From sequence record OR496884.1: a stretch of 64,000 bases of DNA; one strand, written 5' to 3'. The notes beneath the pieces are model-generated. The model worked only from the letters and a program-made list of their open reading frames with translations. It was not told the DNA's origin and made no database searches. The translations under genes and the position numbers were made by a program. Positions 1 through 59,363 of the stretch are shown here, one piece after another (positions within the stretch are counted from its first letter, which is position 1; each line of letters begins with the position of its first letter).

Positions 1-3000
1 GCCATCGGGTTATAATCAGTATCAAACATTGCACTGGATTGATCTTTAACTTCTGCCAGTACCTGATCATATTCAACTTCATCGCCTTCTTTAACATGAA
101 GTTTAAGAACTTGATCATAGTTGACCCTAAACTGATTTATCTTAATAAATGGCGTGGAATTTTTAATTGCGTAATCGTAAGTAATACCAATGGAATCTTC
201 AAAGGTAAATTGATCTTCTATAAGCGCAATTCGAGAAGGTGTTCCTGATTTTAATACGACCCGATTTGGATCAAGTGTATCACGAGTATAGAAAACACTG
301 TCCCAAGCAAGAACCTTACCTTTACCAAATGTTTGACCAACAGAAACATCAGTTACTTTAAAGTGTTTGTGATACTCACCCGCACCTTTACCTATCTCAT
401 AGCCAAGGAAGAATGTGTCTTCAGACCCATCTTCATATTCAACTACAATCCCTTTATCAGTAACTTCTTTTACAGTTCCGTTTTGTTTTGCTACAGAAGT
501 ATAAAGTTCAAAGTTACGATAACCGATCACACTGTCATAAGGAGTACGAAGCGGCGAAGGTTGATAGGACTCTGTTGCCATCCATTGACTAAATTGTACA
601 CCTGAGAAAAGAGATCTTTTTGAATCGTCTATGGTCGAACCATAAACAAGATTCGAAATAACAGACAGTCGACCTGGACTTGTTGTTTTCAAAGAAGGAT
701 CGACGTTACCGGCATAGTCAACAATCTTGGCATCAGACGTTAAGTAAGAAACAAAGCCTGCTTTACCTGAGTCTTTACCTGCTTCAGAAATGATGCCGTC
801 GTAATTAGGAAGTTGACCGCGTGTTCTACGAACCATTGCTTGATCACTTCGTCCAAACGTTCCACCAAATGTCACTTCTTCAATCTGTTTGATCTGGTGA
901 GCTGGGTTAACTTCTTCCACTGGTTGACAAGAACTATCCGTAAGAATAGCCAGCATAATTGATTCAGGGTTAAGGTCAAATGTCTTTTTACCGCCGCCTG
1001 GTTTATTTCTAAACTGTCGGTTAGCCTTTACCATTTCACGATAAGCATGACCTGCAAACCTTTCATACCCTACAATACGCTGCTCGGTGATTTCTACTTC
1101 ATGACCTGCTTCATTATTTAACAACATTTCTATTGCTTTAATAACTAAGTTATCAAGTTCAAGAGGATACTTTCTTTTCTTCAATTCACGCGCATGCATT
1201 GGATCAATGAACTGATCAAACATTTGGTCCATCTCTTTAAAATGAGACGGTTTCACTCGACTGTCATTAACAATAGAGAACCAAACATTAGGATCGTCTA
1301 ATTGAGATCTAGAAAAGTTTTTAATAGCAGGAAGTTTGATTAGACCCGAAAAGATCAATGTTGCTAATTCATCGCGACGATCAAATACCATTCTTTCATC
1401 TGCAAACTGGACCATGTATTCATTAGTGGAAAGGTTTGGTCTGACACCAGGCTCAATAAAACGATGGACAGGTTTCACTCGCTTGATCAACTCGGAGAAC
1501 CCCATCCAATACGCCAAGACCACTACACTCTGGAATTTATATCCATTAATGTAAACAGTGGTATTAGGGACTGGCGCTTTCTCCATTGGGAGACCAATGA
1601 GTTCTTCAATAAAACCTTTTGTTTCACCATCTACAGTGATTAAACCAGAGTTATCAATTAAGACCGGATATCCGTTTTCTTCTCCGACTACCCAAGATTT
1701 GTCATTACAAAGTTTTTTCCATTCCTTATGATTTTCAAGAATGGATCTGGTGTCCAAATTCAATACGAGATCACGAATTGTGATTTCTTTAAATCGTTCA
1801 GCCAGAACAGAGTAATACCAACAAACATTTTTACCAATGACTTCTTGACTACCCAACTTAACTTTAATGGATTTATCCAAATAACTACGTTGGATAATGT
1901 TGGTTTTTAACCAACCACCAAAATCGTCAACACGATAAGGAGAACGTTCTATCATTATCCGCTTATCGTAATAAGTAGACAAGTTAACTTTACGTTTACC
2001 AATTTTACGAATAGGAAGTTCCATTCGAACGTATTGGGAATAGTTCTTTACACCATTGATTGTAAAAGACAAGTCCTCGGCAACTTTAGGAATACGGAAA
2101 CGTCTTGTGGATTGATTACCTTCCCCAATGGGTTGGAATTTAATCGTATAAACGTCATATGCAGAATCAGCAGTAATGATAGATTCGCGTTCCATGTCTA
2201 GGATGGCGATACCGCCACCTTGAGCACCAAACAAAATCGATGCAATGATATCGCGCTCTAAAAACCGTTCAACATATCCGATACCTAAATTACTTGTTCT
2301 GGATTGAAGAACTTCTTTGTTGCTAATAACAACACTGTCTTCCGCAATCTTTTCAGGAACAAATACTAAATCTTCGGGTTTGACGTCAATGATTTCTTCA
2401 AGAGTCCGACCACCAAATTCTATTTCTTTATAGCTGTTAGCAGCATCTGTAAAGAACTCTTTTTCTTTTGTTGTCAATTGTCCACGTTTAGCACGTTTAT
2501 CCAGGATACGTTCAATCGTTCCTGTAGGACTGTATTTTGTTTTCTTAACAGTAACAACAGCGTTCTCTACACTTGCTTGTTCAAAGACGTCGTCTTCGAT
2601 GTCGGTATTAAAGAGTTCTTCAGGGGTTGTTTCGCCGAAATCGGGATCTTCATTTTCCGAAGCATCTCCGCCTCCCTCACTTTCGGGGGGTGGATTGTCC
2701 ACATTAGAAGATCCCTTATTACCGGTGTAAAGGTCAGCCAAACTACCAGGACGATTATCAGTGTCCAGCTTGGGAGCATCTTTAATGTCTGTGTTAGATC
2801 CTCCTTTGCCATCTTCATGTTTATCCTTCCCTTTCGAGGTAACGGCCTCTCCTTCTGATGAAATGCTTTCCTTTTCGGTTTTTCCATTTTTGATTTCCTC
2901 TACCATTGGCGTCACAAGTCCTATTAACGCCAGATAGAACCGTTTAAAATAAATGAACTTTGCATTAGACGGTGTTGTTTCCCCTTCCTTATCTCCAGCG

Positions 3001-3848
3001 CCAATCAAATTGATTAATGTTTGAAGATTAACGACCCAACATTTACCGTCAAATGTAAAAACAAATTCTAATTGAGATTTGGCTTTTTCGGTTAATTTAT
3101 TAAACTGAGAAAACTCAGCAAAGTCATAACCAACCAAAATTCCAAATAAGTCTAATAGCCAAAAACTGCTCTCAGCTTGAAAAGGTTTTAGTGCTTCCTT
3201 TTCATACTTAACAATTTCGGCATCTTTAAAGAATTTACGATAACGTCTAAACGCATCAAATAAAGTTCGATAGCTCGGAAATGAGCGAGGAAGTTTAAAT
3301 TCAACAAATTGATGAACGTCGTGTTGAGCAAATTGATTAACTGCAGTAATTAAATTATGAAGAACGTTATACTGTTGCTGGAAAGAACTAAAGAAAGTAA
3401 ACTGTCGATAAACAACTGGAACTTGAGACATTGCCATGTTATTTACAAGTAGTTCATAATCTTTTCCAATGACAGTATGATAATTACGAGTCCGATAGTA
3501 ATTAAAGTGTCCTGATTCATAGTCTTTAATTTTGGCATTAAAATTAAAAGGGACTTTTTTATGTGTCCCGAGTAATACTTCAAAATCCGGCCAGAAATAA
3601 ATATTAACACGCTTATCAAAATTACTAATAAAAGCTGCTTGGTTACTTGGACCTACTTCATTAGGTAATTGTTGTTGATAATGAATCACAGCGTTACGAG
3701 GAAGCATGACGTCCCCGACGGAACTGTATTTAGGATTAATGATATCATTAACCCGTTCACGTGTTCCCCAAACTTTTAGGAATTGACTATATTGAAGAGC
3801 TTCATTCCCCTCAATACTAAGAAAATCTAATAAAGCATTAGAAATCAT
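1..3848 (-). CDS. Virion RNA polymerase beta subunit, N-terminal part (phiKZ gp178-like); 3' end runs off the window
   Basis: ATG at 3848 overlaps the TGA of the upstream gene (ATGA). I translated most of the frame by hand (about 121-2900) without finding a stop: MISNALLDFLSIEG...YSQYVRMELPIRKIGKRKV...SEAGKDSGKAG...IEDQFTFEDSIGI (RpoB-like FEDS motif). Absent from the ORF track, presumably because no stop codon lies in the window. Confidence 0.9.
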   Translation of the reverse strand, partial: MISNALLDFLSIEGNEALQYSQFLKVWGTRERVNDIINPKYSSVGDVMLPRNAVIHYQQQLPNEVGPSNQAAFISNFDKRVNIYFWPDFEVLLGTHKKVPFNFNAKIKDYESGHFNYYRTRNYHTVIGKDYELLVNNMAMSQVPVVYRQFTFFSSFQQQYNVLHNLITAVNQFAQHDVHQFVEFKLPRSFPSYRTLFDAFRRYRKFFKDAEIVKYEKEALKPFQAESSFWLLDLFGILVGYDFAEFSQFNKLTEKAKSQLEFVFTFDGKCWVVNLQTLINLIGAGDKEGETTPSNAKFIYFKRFYLALIGLVTPMVEEIKNGKTEKESISSEGEAVTSKGKDKHEDGKGGSNTDIKDAPKLDTDNRPGSLADLYTGNKGSSNVDNPPPESEGGGDASENEDPDFGETTPEELFNTDIEDDVFEQASVENAVVTVKKTKYSPTGTIERILDKRAKRGQLTTKEKEFFTDAANSYKEIEFGGRTLEEIIDVKPEDLVFVPEKIAEDSVVISNKEVLQSRTSNLGIGYVERFLERDIIASILFGAQGGGIAILDMERESIITADSAYDVYTIKFQPIGEGNQSTRRFRIPKVAEDLSFTINGVKNYSQYVRMELPIRKIGKRKVNLSTYYDKRIMIERSPYRVDDFGGWLKTNIIQRSYLDKSIKVKLGSQEVIGKNVCWYYSVLAERFKEITIRDLVLNLDTRSILENHKEWKKLCNDKSWVVGEENGYPVLIDNSGLITVDGETKGFIEELIGLPMEKAPVPNTTVYINGYKFQSVVVLAYWMGFSELIKRVKPVHRFIEPGVRPNLSTNEYMVQFADERMVFDRRDELATLIFSGLIKLPAIKNFSRSQLDDPNVWFSIVNDSRVKPSHFKEMDQMFDQFIDPMHARELKKRKYPLELDNLVIKAIEMLLNNEAGHEVEITEQRIVGYERFAGHAYREMVKANRQFRNKPGGGKKTFDLNPESIMLAILTDSSCQPVEEVNPAHQIKQIEEVTFGGTFGRSDQAMVRRTRGQLPNYDGIISEAGKDSGKAGFVSYLTSDAKIVDYAGNVDPSLKTTSPGRLSVISNLVYGSTIDDSKRSLFSGVQFSQWMATESYQPSPLRTPYDSVIGYRNFELYTSVAKQNGTVKEVTDKGIVVEYEDGSEDTFFLGYEIGKGAGEYHKHFKVTDVSVGQTFGKGKVLAWDSVFYTRDTLDPNRVVLKSGTPSRIALIEDQFTFEDSIGITYDYAIKNSTPFIKINQFRVNYDQVLKLHVKEGDEVEYDQVLAEVKDQSSAMFDTDYNPM

Positions 3849-17088: not shown

Positions 17089-17175
17089 AGTTGCTGAACC
17101 TTTTGTTAAAATGAAACTTCACTGTTGTTTACACACAGTGATAATATCTATTTGAATTTTTATGAGGCACTTATA

Positions 17176-31823: not shown

Positions 31824-31840
31824 ATAATATCGGTTTAAAA
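31824..31840 (-). promoter_or_regulatory. Putative vRNAP early promoter
   Basis: Minus strand ttttaaaccgATATTAT, similar to the phiKZ early consensus TATATTAC; one of six intergenic copies. Confidence 0.65.
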
Positions 31841-33256: not shown

Positions 33257-33273
33257 GTAATATAGGTTTGAAA
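33257..33273 (-). promoter_or_regulatory. Putative vRNAP early promoter (exact TATATTAC)
   Basis: Minus strand tttcaaaccTATATTAC, about 55 nt upstream of the start codon. Confidence 0.8.
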
Positions 33274-43289: not shown

Positions 43290-43994
43290 TTAATAAGTAT
43301 TAATTGGATTGATAAGAAAATCCCTACCTTTATTTACTCGTTCTTTGATTTTAGCAATTTCTTCTTGTTCGTATTTCTTGAGCATTGAGTTGATCCGAGA
43401 AGACCGAGTAAGTTTAGGGTGATCCAATTTACCTGTATGAATATTGAACCTGGATATTAGTCCTCCGCATTTATCCGGGAACATTGCATTTCCAAAAGAA
43501 ACAATCTCCAATGCATTGTTCCATCCATCCCCCAGTTTCCAATCTGGCATGTGGTCAATATATCCAGCAATCGCCGGTGCAGCTGGATCAGAGTAATGCC
43601 ATCGGAAGTCTCGATCAACTAAATCTAAACTTTGAAATATATCCGTAACGTGGGGTTCCGTGGTGGGTCCAAAATGTTCAAACCCAACCGCCATGACGTG
43701 ACAACTAACCCTTTCCCTTAGTAATTTTTGTATTCTAGTAAAGTGGTCCCTTGCGCATAGTTCCAATCGCCCGGCAACCATAAGCTCGTCAATAACGTCA
43801 CGTATATCACTGGTTACCCCGGTCCCAACCAAAGCCTTAATTGTTATATTGGAATTTTTGTCGTACCAGTTAAAATTAGGGACGACGATTTTGGTTAGAT
43901 GGAAACTATCACTGGATTTCTTATATTTTTTATTGATGTGAGTACTTGCACCATCGGCAACTAAATGTTTTCCGTCAAACGCTATGATAGTCAT
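43290..43994 (-). CDS. Ntn-hydrolase (HslV/proteasome-beta-like) protein
   Basis: N-terminus MTIIAFDGKHLVADG with Thr2 as putative nucleophile; downstream K, GTG and late G-G motifs. Confidence 0.6.
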   Translation of the reverse strand: MTIIAFDGKHLVADGASTHINKKYKKSSDSFHLTKIVVPNFNWYDKNSNITIKALVGTGVTSDIRDVIDELMVAGRLELCARDHFTRIQKLLRERVSCHVMAVGFEHFGPTTEPHVTDIFQSLDLVDRDFRWHYSDPAAPAIAGYIDHMPDWKLGDGWNNALEIVSFGNAMFPDKCGGLISRFNIHTGKLDHPKLTRSSRINSMLKKYEQEEIAKIKERVNKGRDFLINPINTY

Positions 43995-43997
43995 TAC

Positions 43998-44423
43998 TTA
44001 CCTCTTGGAAATAACAAAATCAGAAAACATGTCAAAAAAGGTTTCTTCATCACAAAAACCAAAGTCCAGCCGTTCTTCCGAGAAGTTTAATCTTTCTGGA
44101 TAAACTATTCCGACTAGATAGTTGTTATACGTTGAGTAATCACAAAGAAAATGACATTCATCTTCCAAGCAATATAACAATTTGCGCAAACTCATATCTT
44201 CTTTGCTATTTTCTTCTCCATGGATAATATCGACATAGTCTATTATCGAATTACACCAAGTAAATTCTTTTGGAGTAAATTCATGTTTGATCTTGAACGC
44301 TCGAGGAAGTTCAAGATCTTCTATTACAGTACCTGCGACACCAGCATAAAACAAAATAGCTTCTTTATCAGCAATTTCAATATGATAAGCTTGAAGAACA
44401 TTTTCTTGTGTAATATGTTTCAT
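43998..44423 (-). CDS. Hypothetical acidic protein (141 aa)
   Basis: In the kinase operon; about 28 D/E versus 13 K/R by hand count. Confidence 0.6.
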   Translation of the reverse strand: MKHITQENVLQAYHIEIADKEAILFYAGVAGTVIEDLELPRAFKIKHEFTPKEFTWCNSIIDYVDIIHGEENSKEDMSLRKLLYCLEDECHFLCDYSTYNNYLVGIVYPERLNFSEERLDFGFCDEETFFDMFSDFVISKR

Positions 44424-44427
44424 TGGA

Positions 44428-44820
44428 TTATCCTAAATCAATTTTAACCAGTTTACCTTCATCTGTTTTACAGAACTGGTTAATGTGGGCATCGTTATCC
44501 CAGAACTCAAAATCTAAATCAGATTCTTCCAGGAGTTTACTAAATAACTCTTTATACTCTTCTTTGTTTTCAAGTGGGGTATAACGTTTCATGATCACAA
44601 TCAAACCAAAAGGATCAGCAAAATAAAGTTTAGGTATACCTACCTTTTCTTTATTCTTTCTAATGCATTCCACCTCCCAACGGTTTGCATACATGTTGTT
44701 TGACAGAACTTCAAAGCTAGGTTCCCATACATCCCATGGAGATATTCTCGGAAACTTAATAACAAAGTTTGGAAACATTAACACATGCCGGCATGTTCCA
44801 ATTGCTTTTGGTTTTATCAT
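44428..44820 (-). CDS. Minimal protein-kinase-like protein A
   Basis: GTCRHV, FVIKFPR, NRWE, DAHINQ catalytic loop, VKIDLG. Confidence 0.65.
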   Translation of the reverse strand: MIKPKAIGTCRHVLMFPNFVIKFPRISPWDVWEPSFEVLSNNMYANRWEVECIRKNKEKVGIPKLYFADPFGLIVIMKRYTPLENKEEYKELFSKLLEESDLDFEFWDNDAHINQFCKTDEGKLVKIDLG

Positions 44821-45248
44821 TCATAAACCCCAATGTCGATTTTAACCAATCGACCATATTTATCCCAGCCGTAATTAAACACTTTATTATCTAGAAACCA
44901 AATATCAACGTACTTTGGATCTTCTTTATCTTGTAATAAAGTCAGTCGTTTTGCATAACGATGATAGTCGTCGTAACTATCTTTGACTTCAGTATACTTC
45001 ATCATTACAACAAATATACCAAAGCACCAATGACCAAGTATAACTGGTAGTGCTTCTGGGAATAGACCTTTATACTCTTTAACGACGTTTATTTCTTGAC
45101 GATTAGACTTTAATCCCCTTTTAAAATCTTTCCAAGATGTAGTACGTGGAATTTTAATAACAAAGTCATTAAAAATAAAAACCTGTCTATCTCTTCCGTA
45201 CATGCATTCTTTAACGCCAAACAGTTTCATTAAAATAAAATCAAACAT
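44817..45248 (-). CDS. Minimal protein-kinase-like protein B
   Basis: GRDRQV, FVIKIPR, NRQE, DNKVFN catalytic loop, VKIDIG. Confidence 0.7.
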   Translation of the reverse strand: MFDFILMKLFGVKECMYGRDRQVFIFNDFVIKIPRTTSWKDFKRGLKSNRQEINVVKEYKGLFPEALPVILGHWCFGIFVVMMKYTEVKDSYDDYHRYAKRLTLLQDKEDPKYVDIWFLDNKVFNYGWDKYGRLVKIDIGVYE

Positions 45249-45295
45249 TTGTTTATTCTCCTAAGTAAATAAACAGTATTGTTATGCACGTATTG

Positions 45296-45312
45296 ATAAT
45301 ATCGGTTTCAAA
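45296..45312 (-). promoter_or_regulatory. Putative early promoter of the kinase operon
   Basis: Minus strand tttgaaaccgATATTAT; 31/35 identical to the element at 31824-31858. Confidence 0.7.
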
Positions 45313-45377: not shown

Positions 45378-45968
45378 ATGATTACCGACAGTATTATCCG
45401 ATCAAAAAGAATAAAGGATCCTTTATTCTCATCAGTAAAATTATATCTTGCTGATCTTGCTCAACAAACCCTAGAGAAATTTGGATTAGCTAAATACGAA
45501 GAAATTACCAATAAATATTACAACCTTAAGAATGAAGATGTTCAAATAGAACCGCCCACCCTTTTCCCTAATGGTAAATTGATTGCATGTTTCTTATCTA
45601 GAAAAAGTGGTTTGTTTTATGCAGATGCTGTTCTTCCCACGGTAGAATTAAAAGATATTTTTAGAGACCTTTTAATTTCTATCCCAGAGAAAACTAAGTT
45701 GCAATTGGAAAATGAAATAAGTGCCAATCAAATCAATTTTGGCTGTTTTTTCTTAACCGATCAAAATGTTTATGTCGTTGTGTTAAACAACAATCAGAAC
45801 TCTATTGATAGTGCATACGAAGCCCTAGGATCAATTTATTGGGAAGAGTTGACACTTACCTTGGAACAGGAACAGAATTCGTATAATAAGCTTTCAGGGA
45901 GTTTAAAAGTTAAATCACCCAATATGGTAGAAATGACATTAGGTGTTTATTTTAAAGAACATTTTTAA
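45378..45968 (+). CDS. Stand-alone paralog of the N-terminal domain of the 60796 tail-fibre-like protein
   Basis: Shared DPLFS.+K.+L, K.ED, GK...C, V.LKDIF, I++EEL.L and SG.++V blocks. Confidence 0.7.
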   Translation: MITDSIIRSKRIKDPLFSSVKLYLADLAQQTLEKFGLAKYEEITNKYYNLKNEDVQIEPPTLFPNGKLIACFLSRKSGLFYADAVLPTVELKDIFRDLLISIPEKTKLQLENEISANQINFGCFFLTDQNVYVVVLNNNQNSIDSAYEALGSIYWEELTLTLEQEQNSYNKLSGSLKVKSPNMVEMTLGVYFKEHF

Positions 45969-45979
45969 ACAAAAATTAT

Positions 45980-46009
45980 ACCTCTGTAGACCGCATGGTC
46001 TACAGAGGT
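45980..46009. terminator. Bidirectional terminator
   Basis: acctctgtagacc-gcat-ggtctacagaggt. Confidence 0.85.
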
Positions 46010-46015
46010 TATGTA

Positions 46016-46442
46016 TTAAAAGTAATATGGATTTGCTTTTATTTCTTTAATTCGTATAAGAAAATCTTCCATAGTTATTTTCTTATATTCAACATCTTCA
46101 TCTATATCTGGAGTGAAATCTTTTTCAAGAAACAACCAGACATCTTTAACTTTTTCCGTTGAAAGTTGATATATGTTTGCGTTTTTGACCAGACCAAATA
46201 AAGTGGGTACTATTTTTTTCATCTGTTCGAACTCGACATGAAACAGAATCACCAAAAAACATCTCATTTGGTACCTCTTTATTCAGGTCAGCAAATCCAC
46301 CGTAAATAGGGTCACAACGGAAATCCCTAGACATATCTCGATGTTGATAACTGTCGCGTTTAACAGTCAACAAAAGAGATGTACAGATGCCATCATCTTC
46401 GTTAATTGCGTAATAACCAGAAAGATATTTAAACATGATCAT
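46016..46442 (-). pseudogene. Frameshifted paralog of 46455..46922 (ORFs 46146..46442 and 46016..46267 joined at an A7 run)
   Basis: The N-half is in one frame and the C-half in the +1 frame; both align to the intact neighbour. Junction GAT GAA AAA AAT AGT at 46213-46219. Confidence 0.7.
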
Positions 46443-46454
46443 TTCCTTAAAAAT

Positions 46455-46922
46455 TTAACAACCGTAAAAATCGTCATCAAAAACACGTTTCCAAATTTCT
46501 TGATATTCTTCACGTTCTATCTTTTTCCAGTCTAACACAACGTCACCTTCCCGACGAGACCCACCAGGATTCCGATCTTTGGGGACAAACAACATTACGG
46601 TAAAACATTTATTTGTTCCAGCCCCTGCAACATAAATGTCACAAGAAGACAATAAAGCTTTAATTCTTTCTTCAGTGTCCTCTTTAGTTTTAACGTTACA
46701 AGAAATGGATTCTCCATTAAAATGTTCAGGAAGGTATTTTGTTTTATCTCGAATAAGAGCGTTGCAAAAACCTCCATTGAATGGAATCATTCTAACAGCT
46801 ACCGCCATCTCTTTATGTTGGAACGCGTCATCTCGACGAGTGATAGCCAAACAACGACCACGACTAAATCGCTGTTCACCAATCCCTTCCAGAACAGTCT
46901 CACCAAATAAATATTTAAACAT
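46455..46922 (-). CDS. Hypothetical protein, intact member of a tandem paralog pair
   Basis: AAGGA RBS; MFKYL...R.D.FQH..M...PFNGGF...F.GES+SC. Confidence 0.7.
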   Translation of the reverse strand: MFKYLFGETVLEGIGEQRFSRGRCLAITRRDDAFQHKEMAVAVRMIPFNGGFCNALIRDKTKYLPEHFNGESISCNVKTKEDTEERIKALLSSCDIYVAGAGTNKCFTVMLFVPKDRNPGGSRREGDVVLDWKKIEREEYQEIWKRVFDDDFYGC

Positions 46923-46924
46923 TT

Positions 46925-47407
46925 TTATTCCTTATTAATTTTAACAAAAAGATCGTAATTGCTAAGACCTTTTTCATTGGTGATTTCTTTACCAAACCAG
47001 TCTGGAATATTTGTAAAGTTATTTGCAGACACTTCATCCGGAAACTCAATTTCAGCGATAACCAAGTCACCAAGGTAATAAAAACGATCCAGTTCGATAA
47101 TAACATCATGAAATGGAATTTTTACTCTTTCCTTAATAACCATCTCGGGAGCTGACGACTCTTCATATTTCTGTAGAAATATTTCTACAGAAATAATGTT
47201 TTCATTTTCAGTTCGAACAAGACCTTCCCCTGTTTTAATGGTTTTAAAACAAGTAACATTATTATCCGTTCTATTTTTTTGGTAACGGAATCTAACTTTG
47301 TCTTTGTCGTAAAATTGGCGAATATAAACGGTATTTTCATTAGAGATCAAACCAGATGGAACTTTATCCAAATCAATCAACCAGCGTCGTTCTATTTCAA
47401 GAGCCAT
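46925..47407 (-). CDS. CYTH-domain triphosphate tunnel metalloenzyme
   Basis: EIERRW (ExExK/R), VRFR, KTIK, RTENE, KER, ELDRF, IAEIEF, PDWFGKEIT...SN. Confidence 0.88.
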   Translation of the reverse strand: MALEIERRWLIDLDKVPSGLISNENTVYIRQFYDKDKVRFRYQKNRTDNNVTCFKTIKTGEGLVRTENENIISVEIFLQKYEESSAPEMVIKERVKIPFHDVIIELDRFYYLGDLVIAEIEFPDEVSANNFTNIPDWFGKEITNEKGLSNYDLFVKINKE

Positions 47408-59346: not shown

Positions 59347-59363
59347 ATAATATCTATTTAAAT
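59347..59363 (-). promoter_or_regulatory. Putative early promoter
   Basis: Minus strand atttaaatagATATTAT. Confidence 0.5.

Follow-up and report, generated by a model that had tools for sequence, protein, structure and literature searches.

Two small adjacent genes near the end of the genome of Aeromonas phage AerS_266, here called A and B, raise the question of whether a kinase-like chain that stops at its DFG-like motif can be an enzyme, and on what such an enzyme would act. AerS_266 is a nucleus-forming jumbo phage of the genus Chaoshanvirus (record OR496884.1, 243,674 bp), described as phiKZ-like and as encoding both chimallin and PhuZ besides two multisubunit RNA polymerases (PMC10673249); that description does not mention kinases. 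The window analysed comprises the final 64 kb of this genome, and all coordinates are window positions unless stated otherwise. As set out below, A and B belong to a large, widespread and uncharacterised phage family, a variant of the kinase fold that stops at the DFG-like motif. The reading that we favour, an early protein kinase serving host takeover or counter-defence, is given a rough probability of 0.45 when taken in full. The pair consists of the following elements, B lying upstream of A:

44817-45248, minus strand: gene B, 143 amino acids (WNV45996.1, annotated hypothetical), a predicted miniature protein of the protein-kinase-like (PKL) fold with the full catalytic set G18, R21, K32, E52, D120, K122, N125, D138 and G140
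45000-45209, minus strand: N-lobe of B (residues 14-83), delimited by the secondary structure of the model and by the alignment
44829-44891, minus strand: residues 120-140 of B, with the loop D-N-K-V-F-N, two short strands and the putatively Mg-binding D138-I-G140
44428-44820, minus strand: gene A, 130 amino acids (WNV45995.1, annotated hypothetical), a diverged paralogue of B
44431-44493, minus strand: residues 110-130 of A, from the catalytic loop D-A-H-I-N-Q to the terminal I-D-L-G

An earlier note, made from the letters of this DNA, had described two translationally coupled tandem paralogues of 130 and 143 residues with a reduced kinase skeleton, and this description held. The stop codon of B and the start codon of A share a 4-nucleotide (nt) ATGA overlap, and the proteins align over their full length (BLASTP expectation value (E) 2e-12, 26% identity). 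All motifs that it had listed for both proteins are present, namely the G-x-x-R-x-V loop, V-I-K, N-x-x-E and the C-terminal I-D-[IL]-G, and the catalytic loops do read D-x4-N in B and D-A-H-I-N-Q in A. In the N-lobe of B, the G-x-x-R-x-V loop and K32 belong to strands beta1-beta3, and helix C, which bears N49 and E52, is followed by strands beta4-beta5. A keeps G8, R11, K22, E49, D110, D128 and G130, has no Lys two residues past the catalytic Asp and reads N-Q where its relatives read x-N; it also carries an insert of 8 residues after beta3. The chain of B ends three residues past the DFG-like motif, that of A with the Gly of the motif itself.

The structure of B was modelled with AlphaFold2 using an alignment of 113 sequences, which gave a predicted local distance difference test score (pLDDT) of 94.9 and a predicted TM-score (pTM) of 0.85; prediction from the single sequence (pLDDT 42) was not usable. 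The model begins with an N-terminal helix, followed by beta-strands 14-17, 21-25 and 29-34, helix 39-58 with N49 and E52, strands 70-74 and 79-83, helices 92-108 and 111-118, the D120-N125 loop, two short strands, D138-I-G140 and three further residues. When it was compared with the PDB in Foldseek, all of the best 50 matches were PKL folds, among them WbdD (E 1.2e-4), PRPK/Bud32 (7e-4), the capreomycin phosphotransferase Cph, Rio2, APH(2''), PknB and the kinase domain of a lanthipeptide synthetase, with query-normalised TM-scores of about 0.37-0.67. In BFVD, the best matches were uncharacterised Aeromonas phage proteins, next came a protein that Ralstonia phage RP12 encodes under the name 'protein kinase domain-containing protein' (E 1.8e-8), and then many kinases of phages and giant viruses. 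The structure search that the earlier note had proposed thus recovered a kinase fold, which removes the lack of one as an objection, and its yield of PKL folds only supports the reduced kinase skeleton proposed for both proteins.

The family profile, searched against PDB sequences, gave sub-threshold matches (E 0.05-1.4), 27 of the 30 listed chains being kinases, and its alignments to TTK, CK1, KSR2 and AceK were in register from the catalytic loop through DFG; searches of PDB sequences with single proteins or with a 17-sequence profile returned nothing meaningful. Of the features that define the PKL fold, the five-stranded N-lobe sheet, helix C and a helical segment carrying the catalytic loop were found, as was the catalytic-loop Asp with an Asn five positions on (D120/N125 in B; D110 and N-Q in A). 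A full C-lobe past the DFG motif is absent from both A and B.

Conservation was evaluated across 113 diverged relatives, in an alignment whose columns average 16% identity, using the residue numbers of B. G18, R21, K32 and E52 each have a share of 1.00, the beta3 Lys and helix-C Glu (K32/E52 in B, K22/E49 in A) being invariant, and V23 (0.96), P34 (0.97), G45 (0.93), N49 (0.96) and G77 (0.99) follow closely. The catalytic Asp D120 is found in a share of 0.89, with Glu in the remaining 0.11; further along the chain, K122 has a share of 0.69, N125 of 0.88, G127 of 0.90, V135 of 0.91, the DFG-like Asp D138 (D128 in A; predicted to bind Mg) of 0.99, Y139 of 0.79 and G140 of 0.76. Since the same columns survive across such distant relatives, the motifs pointed out in the earlier note are not chance matches. 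The nucleotide loop of the family is G-x-x-R-x-V, with a single Gly and the invariant Arg. The marks of eukaryotic kinases, i.e. a G-x-G-x-x-G loop, an APE motif and a His-Arg just ahead of the catalytic Asp, are absent from the aligned family, and the two positions preceding D120 are not conserved.

Because the ATP-Mg ligands and the putative catalytic base are strongly conserved, these shares suggest catalysis rather than binding alone. The proteins might instead be non-catalytic nucleotide binders that use a kinase N-lobe as a sponge, decoy or scaffold: much of the canonical catalytic domain is absent, and phages are known to counter signalling defences with small proteins that sequester nucleotides. 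Yet mere binding needs no catalytic base, and a role confined to it is therefore disfavoured by the retention of the catalytic Asp, the Mg-binding Asn and the DFG-like Asp at shares of 0.88-0.99 despite 16% mean identity; we consider it very improbable. Purifying selection acts on both genes, with ratios of non-synonymous to synonymous substitution rates (dN/dS) of 0.11 for A and 0.17 for B between AerS_266 and phage ZPAH34, values that are only rough because dS is near saturation; the corresponding amino-acid identities are 85% for A and 67% for B. Judged from the alignment together with the model, the assignment of the family to the PKL fold and to this class of enzymes is highly probable.

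The end point of A and B recurs throughout the family. Among the 135 relatives in which the DFG-like motif could be located, 92 end 0-3 residues past it and 13 more within 10. As most relatives share this end point, they form a family without the activation segment and the later C-lobe helices, and ending at the DFG-like motif is a family trait, not an accident of truncation. Most members are 115-150 amino acids long (median of the 113 relatives, 127), with rare members of 270-350 amino acids that carry heterogeneous C-terminal extensions without a Pfam match. The long members were also considered as a fusion ('Rosetta stone') clue, which was rejected: their extensions match each other over at most about 50 residues and match no neighbour of A and B. 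Their existence, together with a chain length of about half that of known kinase domains, would suit an explanation in which A and B are decayed, functionless fragments of a formerly full-length kinase gene. Such decay is, however, contradicted by the identical end point in 92 of 135 members, by the extensions of the long forms, which are mutually unrelated and contain no kinase C-lobe, by dN/dS values of 0.11-0.17, by a confident and compact model and by the persistence of orthologues in three phage genera, so that it retains almost no probability.

In the PHROG database, both proteins match PHROG 4301 ('unknown function') over their full length (B, E 6.5e-20, residues 7-142; A, E 3.1e-11, residues 6-130), and every relative tested matches it too. 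The family profile, run against 1.84 billion cluster representatives, picked out 425 proteins at E<=1e-3, nearly all of 110-190 amino acids, which makes at least 425 sequence clusters, and tblastn with a central family member found 126 phage records. Carriers include T4-like coliphages, 121Q-like giants, jumbo phages of Erwinia, Ralstonia and Klebsiella, and Pseudomonas siphophages of about 58 kb; one carrier, MZ501098.1, is a BASEL phage of E. coli K-12. Four records label the family copy 'serine/threonine kinase' or similar, so the resemblance to kinases has already been noticed ad hoc; in the literature, no paper was found that describes the PHROG 4301 family or its truncated architecture. 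A pattern search with a sub-alignment of 6 sequences hit three viral loci and no bacterial genome locus, a result that, with so narrow a pattern, says little on prophages.

When the genes would be expressed was approached through the region upstream of B, which contains the following elements:

45257-45262, minus strand: Shine-Dalgarno-like AGGAGA, 8 nt 5' of the B start codon
45296-45308, minus strand: AT-rich promoter-like motif of 13 nt, AAAYMKATATTAY, 47 nt 5' of the B ATG
45980-46009, both strands: hairpin resembling a bidirectional intrinsic terminator, with a perfect 13-bp stem (7 G-C pairs) and T-runs on either strand
17141-17153, 31824-31836, 33257-33269, 45296-45308 and 59347-59359, minus strand: exact copies of the degenerate pattern AAAYMKATATTAY

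The hairpin probably closes both the upstream minus-strand operon and a divergent plus-strand gene at 45378-45968, and the spacer of 129 nt between this gene and B holds the AT-rich motif. Because the divergent gene and the hairpin stand upstream, B must have a promoter of its own. The five exact copies in the window are all on the minus strand, intergenic, upstream of runs of minus-strand genes and preceded by a T-rich stretch; with at most one mismatch, 10 matches were counted, compared with 3.4+-2.0 in shuffled sequences, and 0 of 100 shuffles reached 10. The motif is kept at the same place 5' of the ZPAH34 orthologue, with diverged flanks. According to a review of jumbo-phage RNA polymerases, all jumbo phages examined that encode such a polymerase have their early operons marked by a conserved AT-rich motif of about 10 nt (PMC7598289), and we infer by comparison that the motif at 45296-45308 is an early promoter of the virion RNA polymerase. 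The five exact copies are candidate early promoters of this polymerase and could be used for mapping early operons genome-wide. A scan for sigma-70 promoters (13 matches, 19.9 in shuffles) was uninformative, as expected because the phage has its own RNA polymerases. The claim of the earlier note that the pair stands first in an early operon therefore divides into two parts: the position of B as the first gene of its operon is well supported by the motif and by the strong terminator upstream, and the early timing of this operon is plausible and rests on the motif.

For the pair we propose the following mechanism. A and B are anciently duplicated members of PHROG 4301, taken as a phage-specific family of miniature kinase-like enzymes, each with a full nucleotide-binding N-lobe, a two-helix stub, a catalytic loop and a Mg-binding DFG-like motif, at which the chain ends. 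The genes would be transcribed early by the virion RNA polymerase, and the products would perform ATP-dependent phosphotransfer from an open active site that has no activation loop. B would be a constitutively open, activation-loop-independent phosphotransferase, read as Ser/Thr-type because of the Lys two residues past the catalytic Asp, as in the profile-aligned protein kinases, and would phosphorylate host (or phage) proteins in the cytoplasm for takeover or counter-defence. A would be a diverged copy that may still bind ATP-Mg; from its remodelled catalytic loop we propose that it acts on another substrate or modulates B. The kinase fold and the ATP-dependent chemistry are well supported by sequence and model, and a protein as the acceptor, suggested by the Lys and by analogy, is less certain. 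The T7 kinase disarms defences through pervasive phosphorylation (PMC13645617), and a function in host takeover or anti-defence by phosphorylation is proposed here by analogy with it.

Several observations weigh against this proposal. A and B have neither an activation segment nor a P+1 loop nor the later helices, and so none of the parts with which canonical protein kinases bind peptide substrates. The top PDB matches include kinases of sugars and antibiotics (WbdD, Cph, APH) and the ATPase-like Rio2 and PRPK/Bud32, and a T7-type kinase PHROG is connected only weakly, through a match of A but not of B (phrog_15752, E 0.0056). No Pfam kinase model matched A, B or 17 close relatives at E<=1; NCBIfam had no model that matched the 113 relatives and PADLOC had none either, and as no Pfam or NCBIfam model matches, the family is a separate PKL family apart from the curated eukaryotic-type kinases. 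Across the loci compared, no recurrent partner was found, the genes lying in arrays of unknown small genes. Finally, the plausible term 'early' rests on the motif rather than on transcripts.

Some of these observations would fit an enzyme of identical fold and ATP-Mg chemistry that acts on something other than a protein, either as a kinase of glycans or small molecules (a sugar, a nucleotide, a signalling molecule or a compound like an antibiotic) or as an ATPase resembling RIO and Bud32. Its PDB neighbours are of this kind (WbdD, which phosphorylates the sugar at a polysaccharide end, the capreomycin and aminoglycoside phosphotransferases, Rio2 and PRPK/Bud32), two relatives weakly match the model of the ABC1/UbiB atypical kinases, and the peptide-binding elements of canonical kinases are all missing. 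Against it, the Lys two residues past the catalytic Asp is found in 69% of the family and in all B-type proteins, as in profile-aligned protein kinases, and the Foldseek E-values for small-molecule and for protein kinases fall into the same range (1e-4 to 5e-3). The genomic surroundings, given below, have also been brought to bear on this alternative, which we hold to be somewhat unlikely.

The proposed division of labour between A and B depends on the history of the pair. The order B-then-A is found in phages of the genera Chaoshanvirus, Ferozepurvirus and Ludhianavirus, with ZPAH34, PS1 and LAh10 among them, and in a metagenomic contig, and since it is kept across these genera, the duplication predates them; in LAh10, an unrelated open reading frame (ORF) separates the two genes. 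All B-type proteins keep D-x-K-x-x-N. In A-type proteins, the Asp is kept, the Lys two residues on is never present and the 8-residue insert after beta3 recurs, and the Asn is kept except in the subgroup of AerS_266 and ZPAH34, which has N-Q. The suspicion that A is a pseudokinase was not borne out: K22, D110 and D128 are kept and distant A-type orthologues have the Asn, and with beta3 Lys, catalytic Asp and DFG Asp all retained, A falls outside the usual definition of a pseudokinase. A is moreover under stronger purifying selection than B.

An obligate pair, in line with the heterodimer suggested in the earlier note, in which A would have a regulatory role and weakened catalysis and would complete or activate B at the bare C-lobe face of B, would explain the ATGA stop/start overlap, the B-then-A order maintained in three genera and in the metagenomic contig, and the systematic loss of the catalytic-loop Lys in the A lineage. 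It would also account for the observation that every A-type gene seen was accompanied by a B-type gene, so that A-type proteins may depend on B-type proteins. It is opposed by B-type genes without a detectable A-type gene in AVP1, ACP1, pAEv1810 and CF8, by AhC3_1, where the A-type and B-type genes lie 2.7 kb apart and in reverse order, by the split arrangement in LAh10, by a family that is mostly single-copy (T4-like phages, Erwinia phage Y3, Pseudomonas siphophages), and by A itself, in which the Lys and both Asp residues are retained and whose rate of evolution is lower than that of B. We judge such a pair improbable for AerS_266, and given the B-only phages, the separation in AhC3_1 and the prevalence of single copies, an obligate heterodimer is unlikely as a general rule. 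Independently of this question, the metagenomic contig L015 (96.5 kb) was found to contain three family copies, at contig positions 2247-2639, 4001-4369 and 4379-4852, which are A-like, generic and B-like, respectively. The combined Ser, Thr and Tyr content was also recorded: that of A is 0.092, the third lowest among the 74 proteins of the window (mean 0.153, standard deviation 0.027), and that of B, 0.119, is unremarkable; the depletion in A recalls the one reported around the T7 kinase but is too weak to interpret.

Neighbouring genes were inspected in AerS_266 and at the other loci. In the window, these are:

43998-44423, minus strand: protein of 141 amino acids, pI 4.56, co-oriented downstream neighbour
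43290-43994, minus strand: protein of 234 amino acids beginning M-T-I-I-A-F-D-G, co-oriented downstream neighbour
46146-46442 and 46455-46922, minus strand: second tandem paralogue pair (98 and 155 amino acids), next operon upstream

The earlier note had placed the pair upstream of an acidic protein and an N-terminal nucleophile (Ntn) hydrolase. The former is indeed acidic, and the label of the latter, the 234-residue protein, could not be verified: it matched the HslV family of PHROG at E 0.064 over 25 residues only, it had no match among PDB profiles, and the residue after its initiator Met is not invariant in an alignment of 8 sequences. Aeromonas phage CF8 and a Shewanella metagenome bin carry homologues of it. 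Among the loci compared, the 141- and 234-residue genes occur only in that of ZPAH34, and being confined to Chaoshanvirus they form no conserved module with the kinase-like genes. The members of the second tandem pair resemble each other over the N-terminal 85 residues (BLASTP E 3e-11, 36% identity), and the pair adjoins a gene annotated as CYTH-like phosphatase (46925-47407).

At the LAh10 locus (L006), a phosphoesterase gene (locus positions 2782-3390; phrog_547, E 5e-40) lies directly 5' of the B-type gene. It is annotated as a 'putative serine/threonine protein phosphatase', a label that was not upheld, the protein being a generic phosphoesterase only, with no Pfam match and a weak PDB match. 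Kinase and phosphoesterase could be paired in Ludhianavirus; the AerS_266 locus has no such phosphoesterase gene. T4-like phages carry their one family member in hypervariable accessory regions, as in Tequatrovirus G4507 (L011, positions 2983-3363), where it stands between a 'putative nuclease inhibitor' gene and a tRNA cluster. In Escherichia phage JS10 (L007, positions 3477-3845), the single member lies 2 nt upstream of the gene for RNA ligase 2 (rnlB). In phage 2L372X, the family member is located between nrd genes, and a thymidylate-synthase gene (thyA) lies about 3 kb downstream in AerS_266, LAh10 and L015; in L015, a gene for a 474-residue protein of the thymidylate-synthase family lies 1.3 kb downstream. 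Surroundings linked to nucleotide metabolism (thyA, and nrd in 2L372X), together with rnlB in JS10, would favour an acceptor other than protein, but they vary by lineage and may mirror the ordinary clustering of accessory genes.

Should the proteins be active, the minimum for catalysis by a kinase fold would be redefined at about half the size of the smallest kinase domains that have been characterised, and without an activation loop, and a second and much more widespread class of phage kinases would stand beside the T7 type. A bolder version appears unlikely: no known self-sufficient kinase catalytic unit would be smaller than these proteins (about 120-140 residues, without an activation segment or the central C-lobe helices), their open active site would make them promiscuous early kinases for takeover or counter-defence in many unrelated phage lineages, and the B/A pair would have specialised after an ancient duplication in Aeromonas jumbo phages. 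If they act on small molecules, about 126 sequenced phages would still carry an unannotated enzyme family. Under both readings, 'protein-kinase-like fold, PHROG 4301' can replace about 126 annotations as 'hypothetical protein', and descriptive follow-up is feasible because one of the carriers, MZ501098.1, infects E. coli K-12.

Among known systems, A and B are members of PHROG 4301, whose profile of 225 positions is longer and is covered by them from about 34 to 169. PRPK/Bud32 and Rio2 are among the best structural matches of B (E 7e-4 to 4e-3, query TM-score at most 0.67). A classical activation loop is missing from both, their C-lobe is reduced as well, and both are cellular proteins that work in complexes for tRNA modification and ribosome maturation and are not phage accessory genes. 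Unlike A and B, their matched chains of 223-325 residues run well past the DFG-like motif, and no relation at the sequence level was found in the library and PDB sequence searches. Cph and APH(2'') share with B the logic of an ATP-binding N-lobe and a catalytic loop (Foldseek E 7.5e-4 to 3e-3) and differ by a length of about 280-300 residues, including a helical, substrate-binding C-terminal half that is absent from A and B; here, too, no relation at the sequence level was found. The kinase domain of WbdD, a regulator of O-antigen chain length, is the best PDB match of B with 17-18% identity and has the PKL fold, but it is one domain of a bifunctional kinase-methyltransferase of 400-500 residues, has a full C-lobe and acts on a sugar, not on a protein; no support was found for an action of A or B on polysaccharides.

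HopBF1 is described as a minimal, atypical kinase fold whose sequence hardly resembles those of eukaryotic kinases (PMC9950578). It was not among the sequence or structure matches of A and B, and differs from them in being a secreted bacterial effector; its kinase domain is small but complete, and the chains of A and B stop at the DFG-like motif. The functional parallel drawn in the earlier note is T7 gp0.7 (T7K; PHROG 2828), the product of an early gene, which is PKL-type, has no canonical DFG and is promiscuous on host proteins; its homologues have a conserved D-P-V and usually a C-terminal domain for shut-off or DNA binding (PMC13645617). PHROG 2828 was not among the matches of A and B at E<=0.1, the phrog_15752 match of A given above concerning a family of similar annotation, and the Autographiviridae kinases match B in structure (E 5e-4 to 9e-4) no better than do unrelated PKL proteins. 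In contrast to T7K, A and B carry D-[IL]-G (D-Y-G in the family) rather than D-P-V, and their chains have no C-terminal domain.

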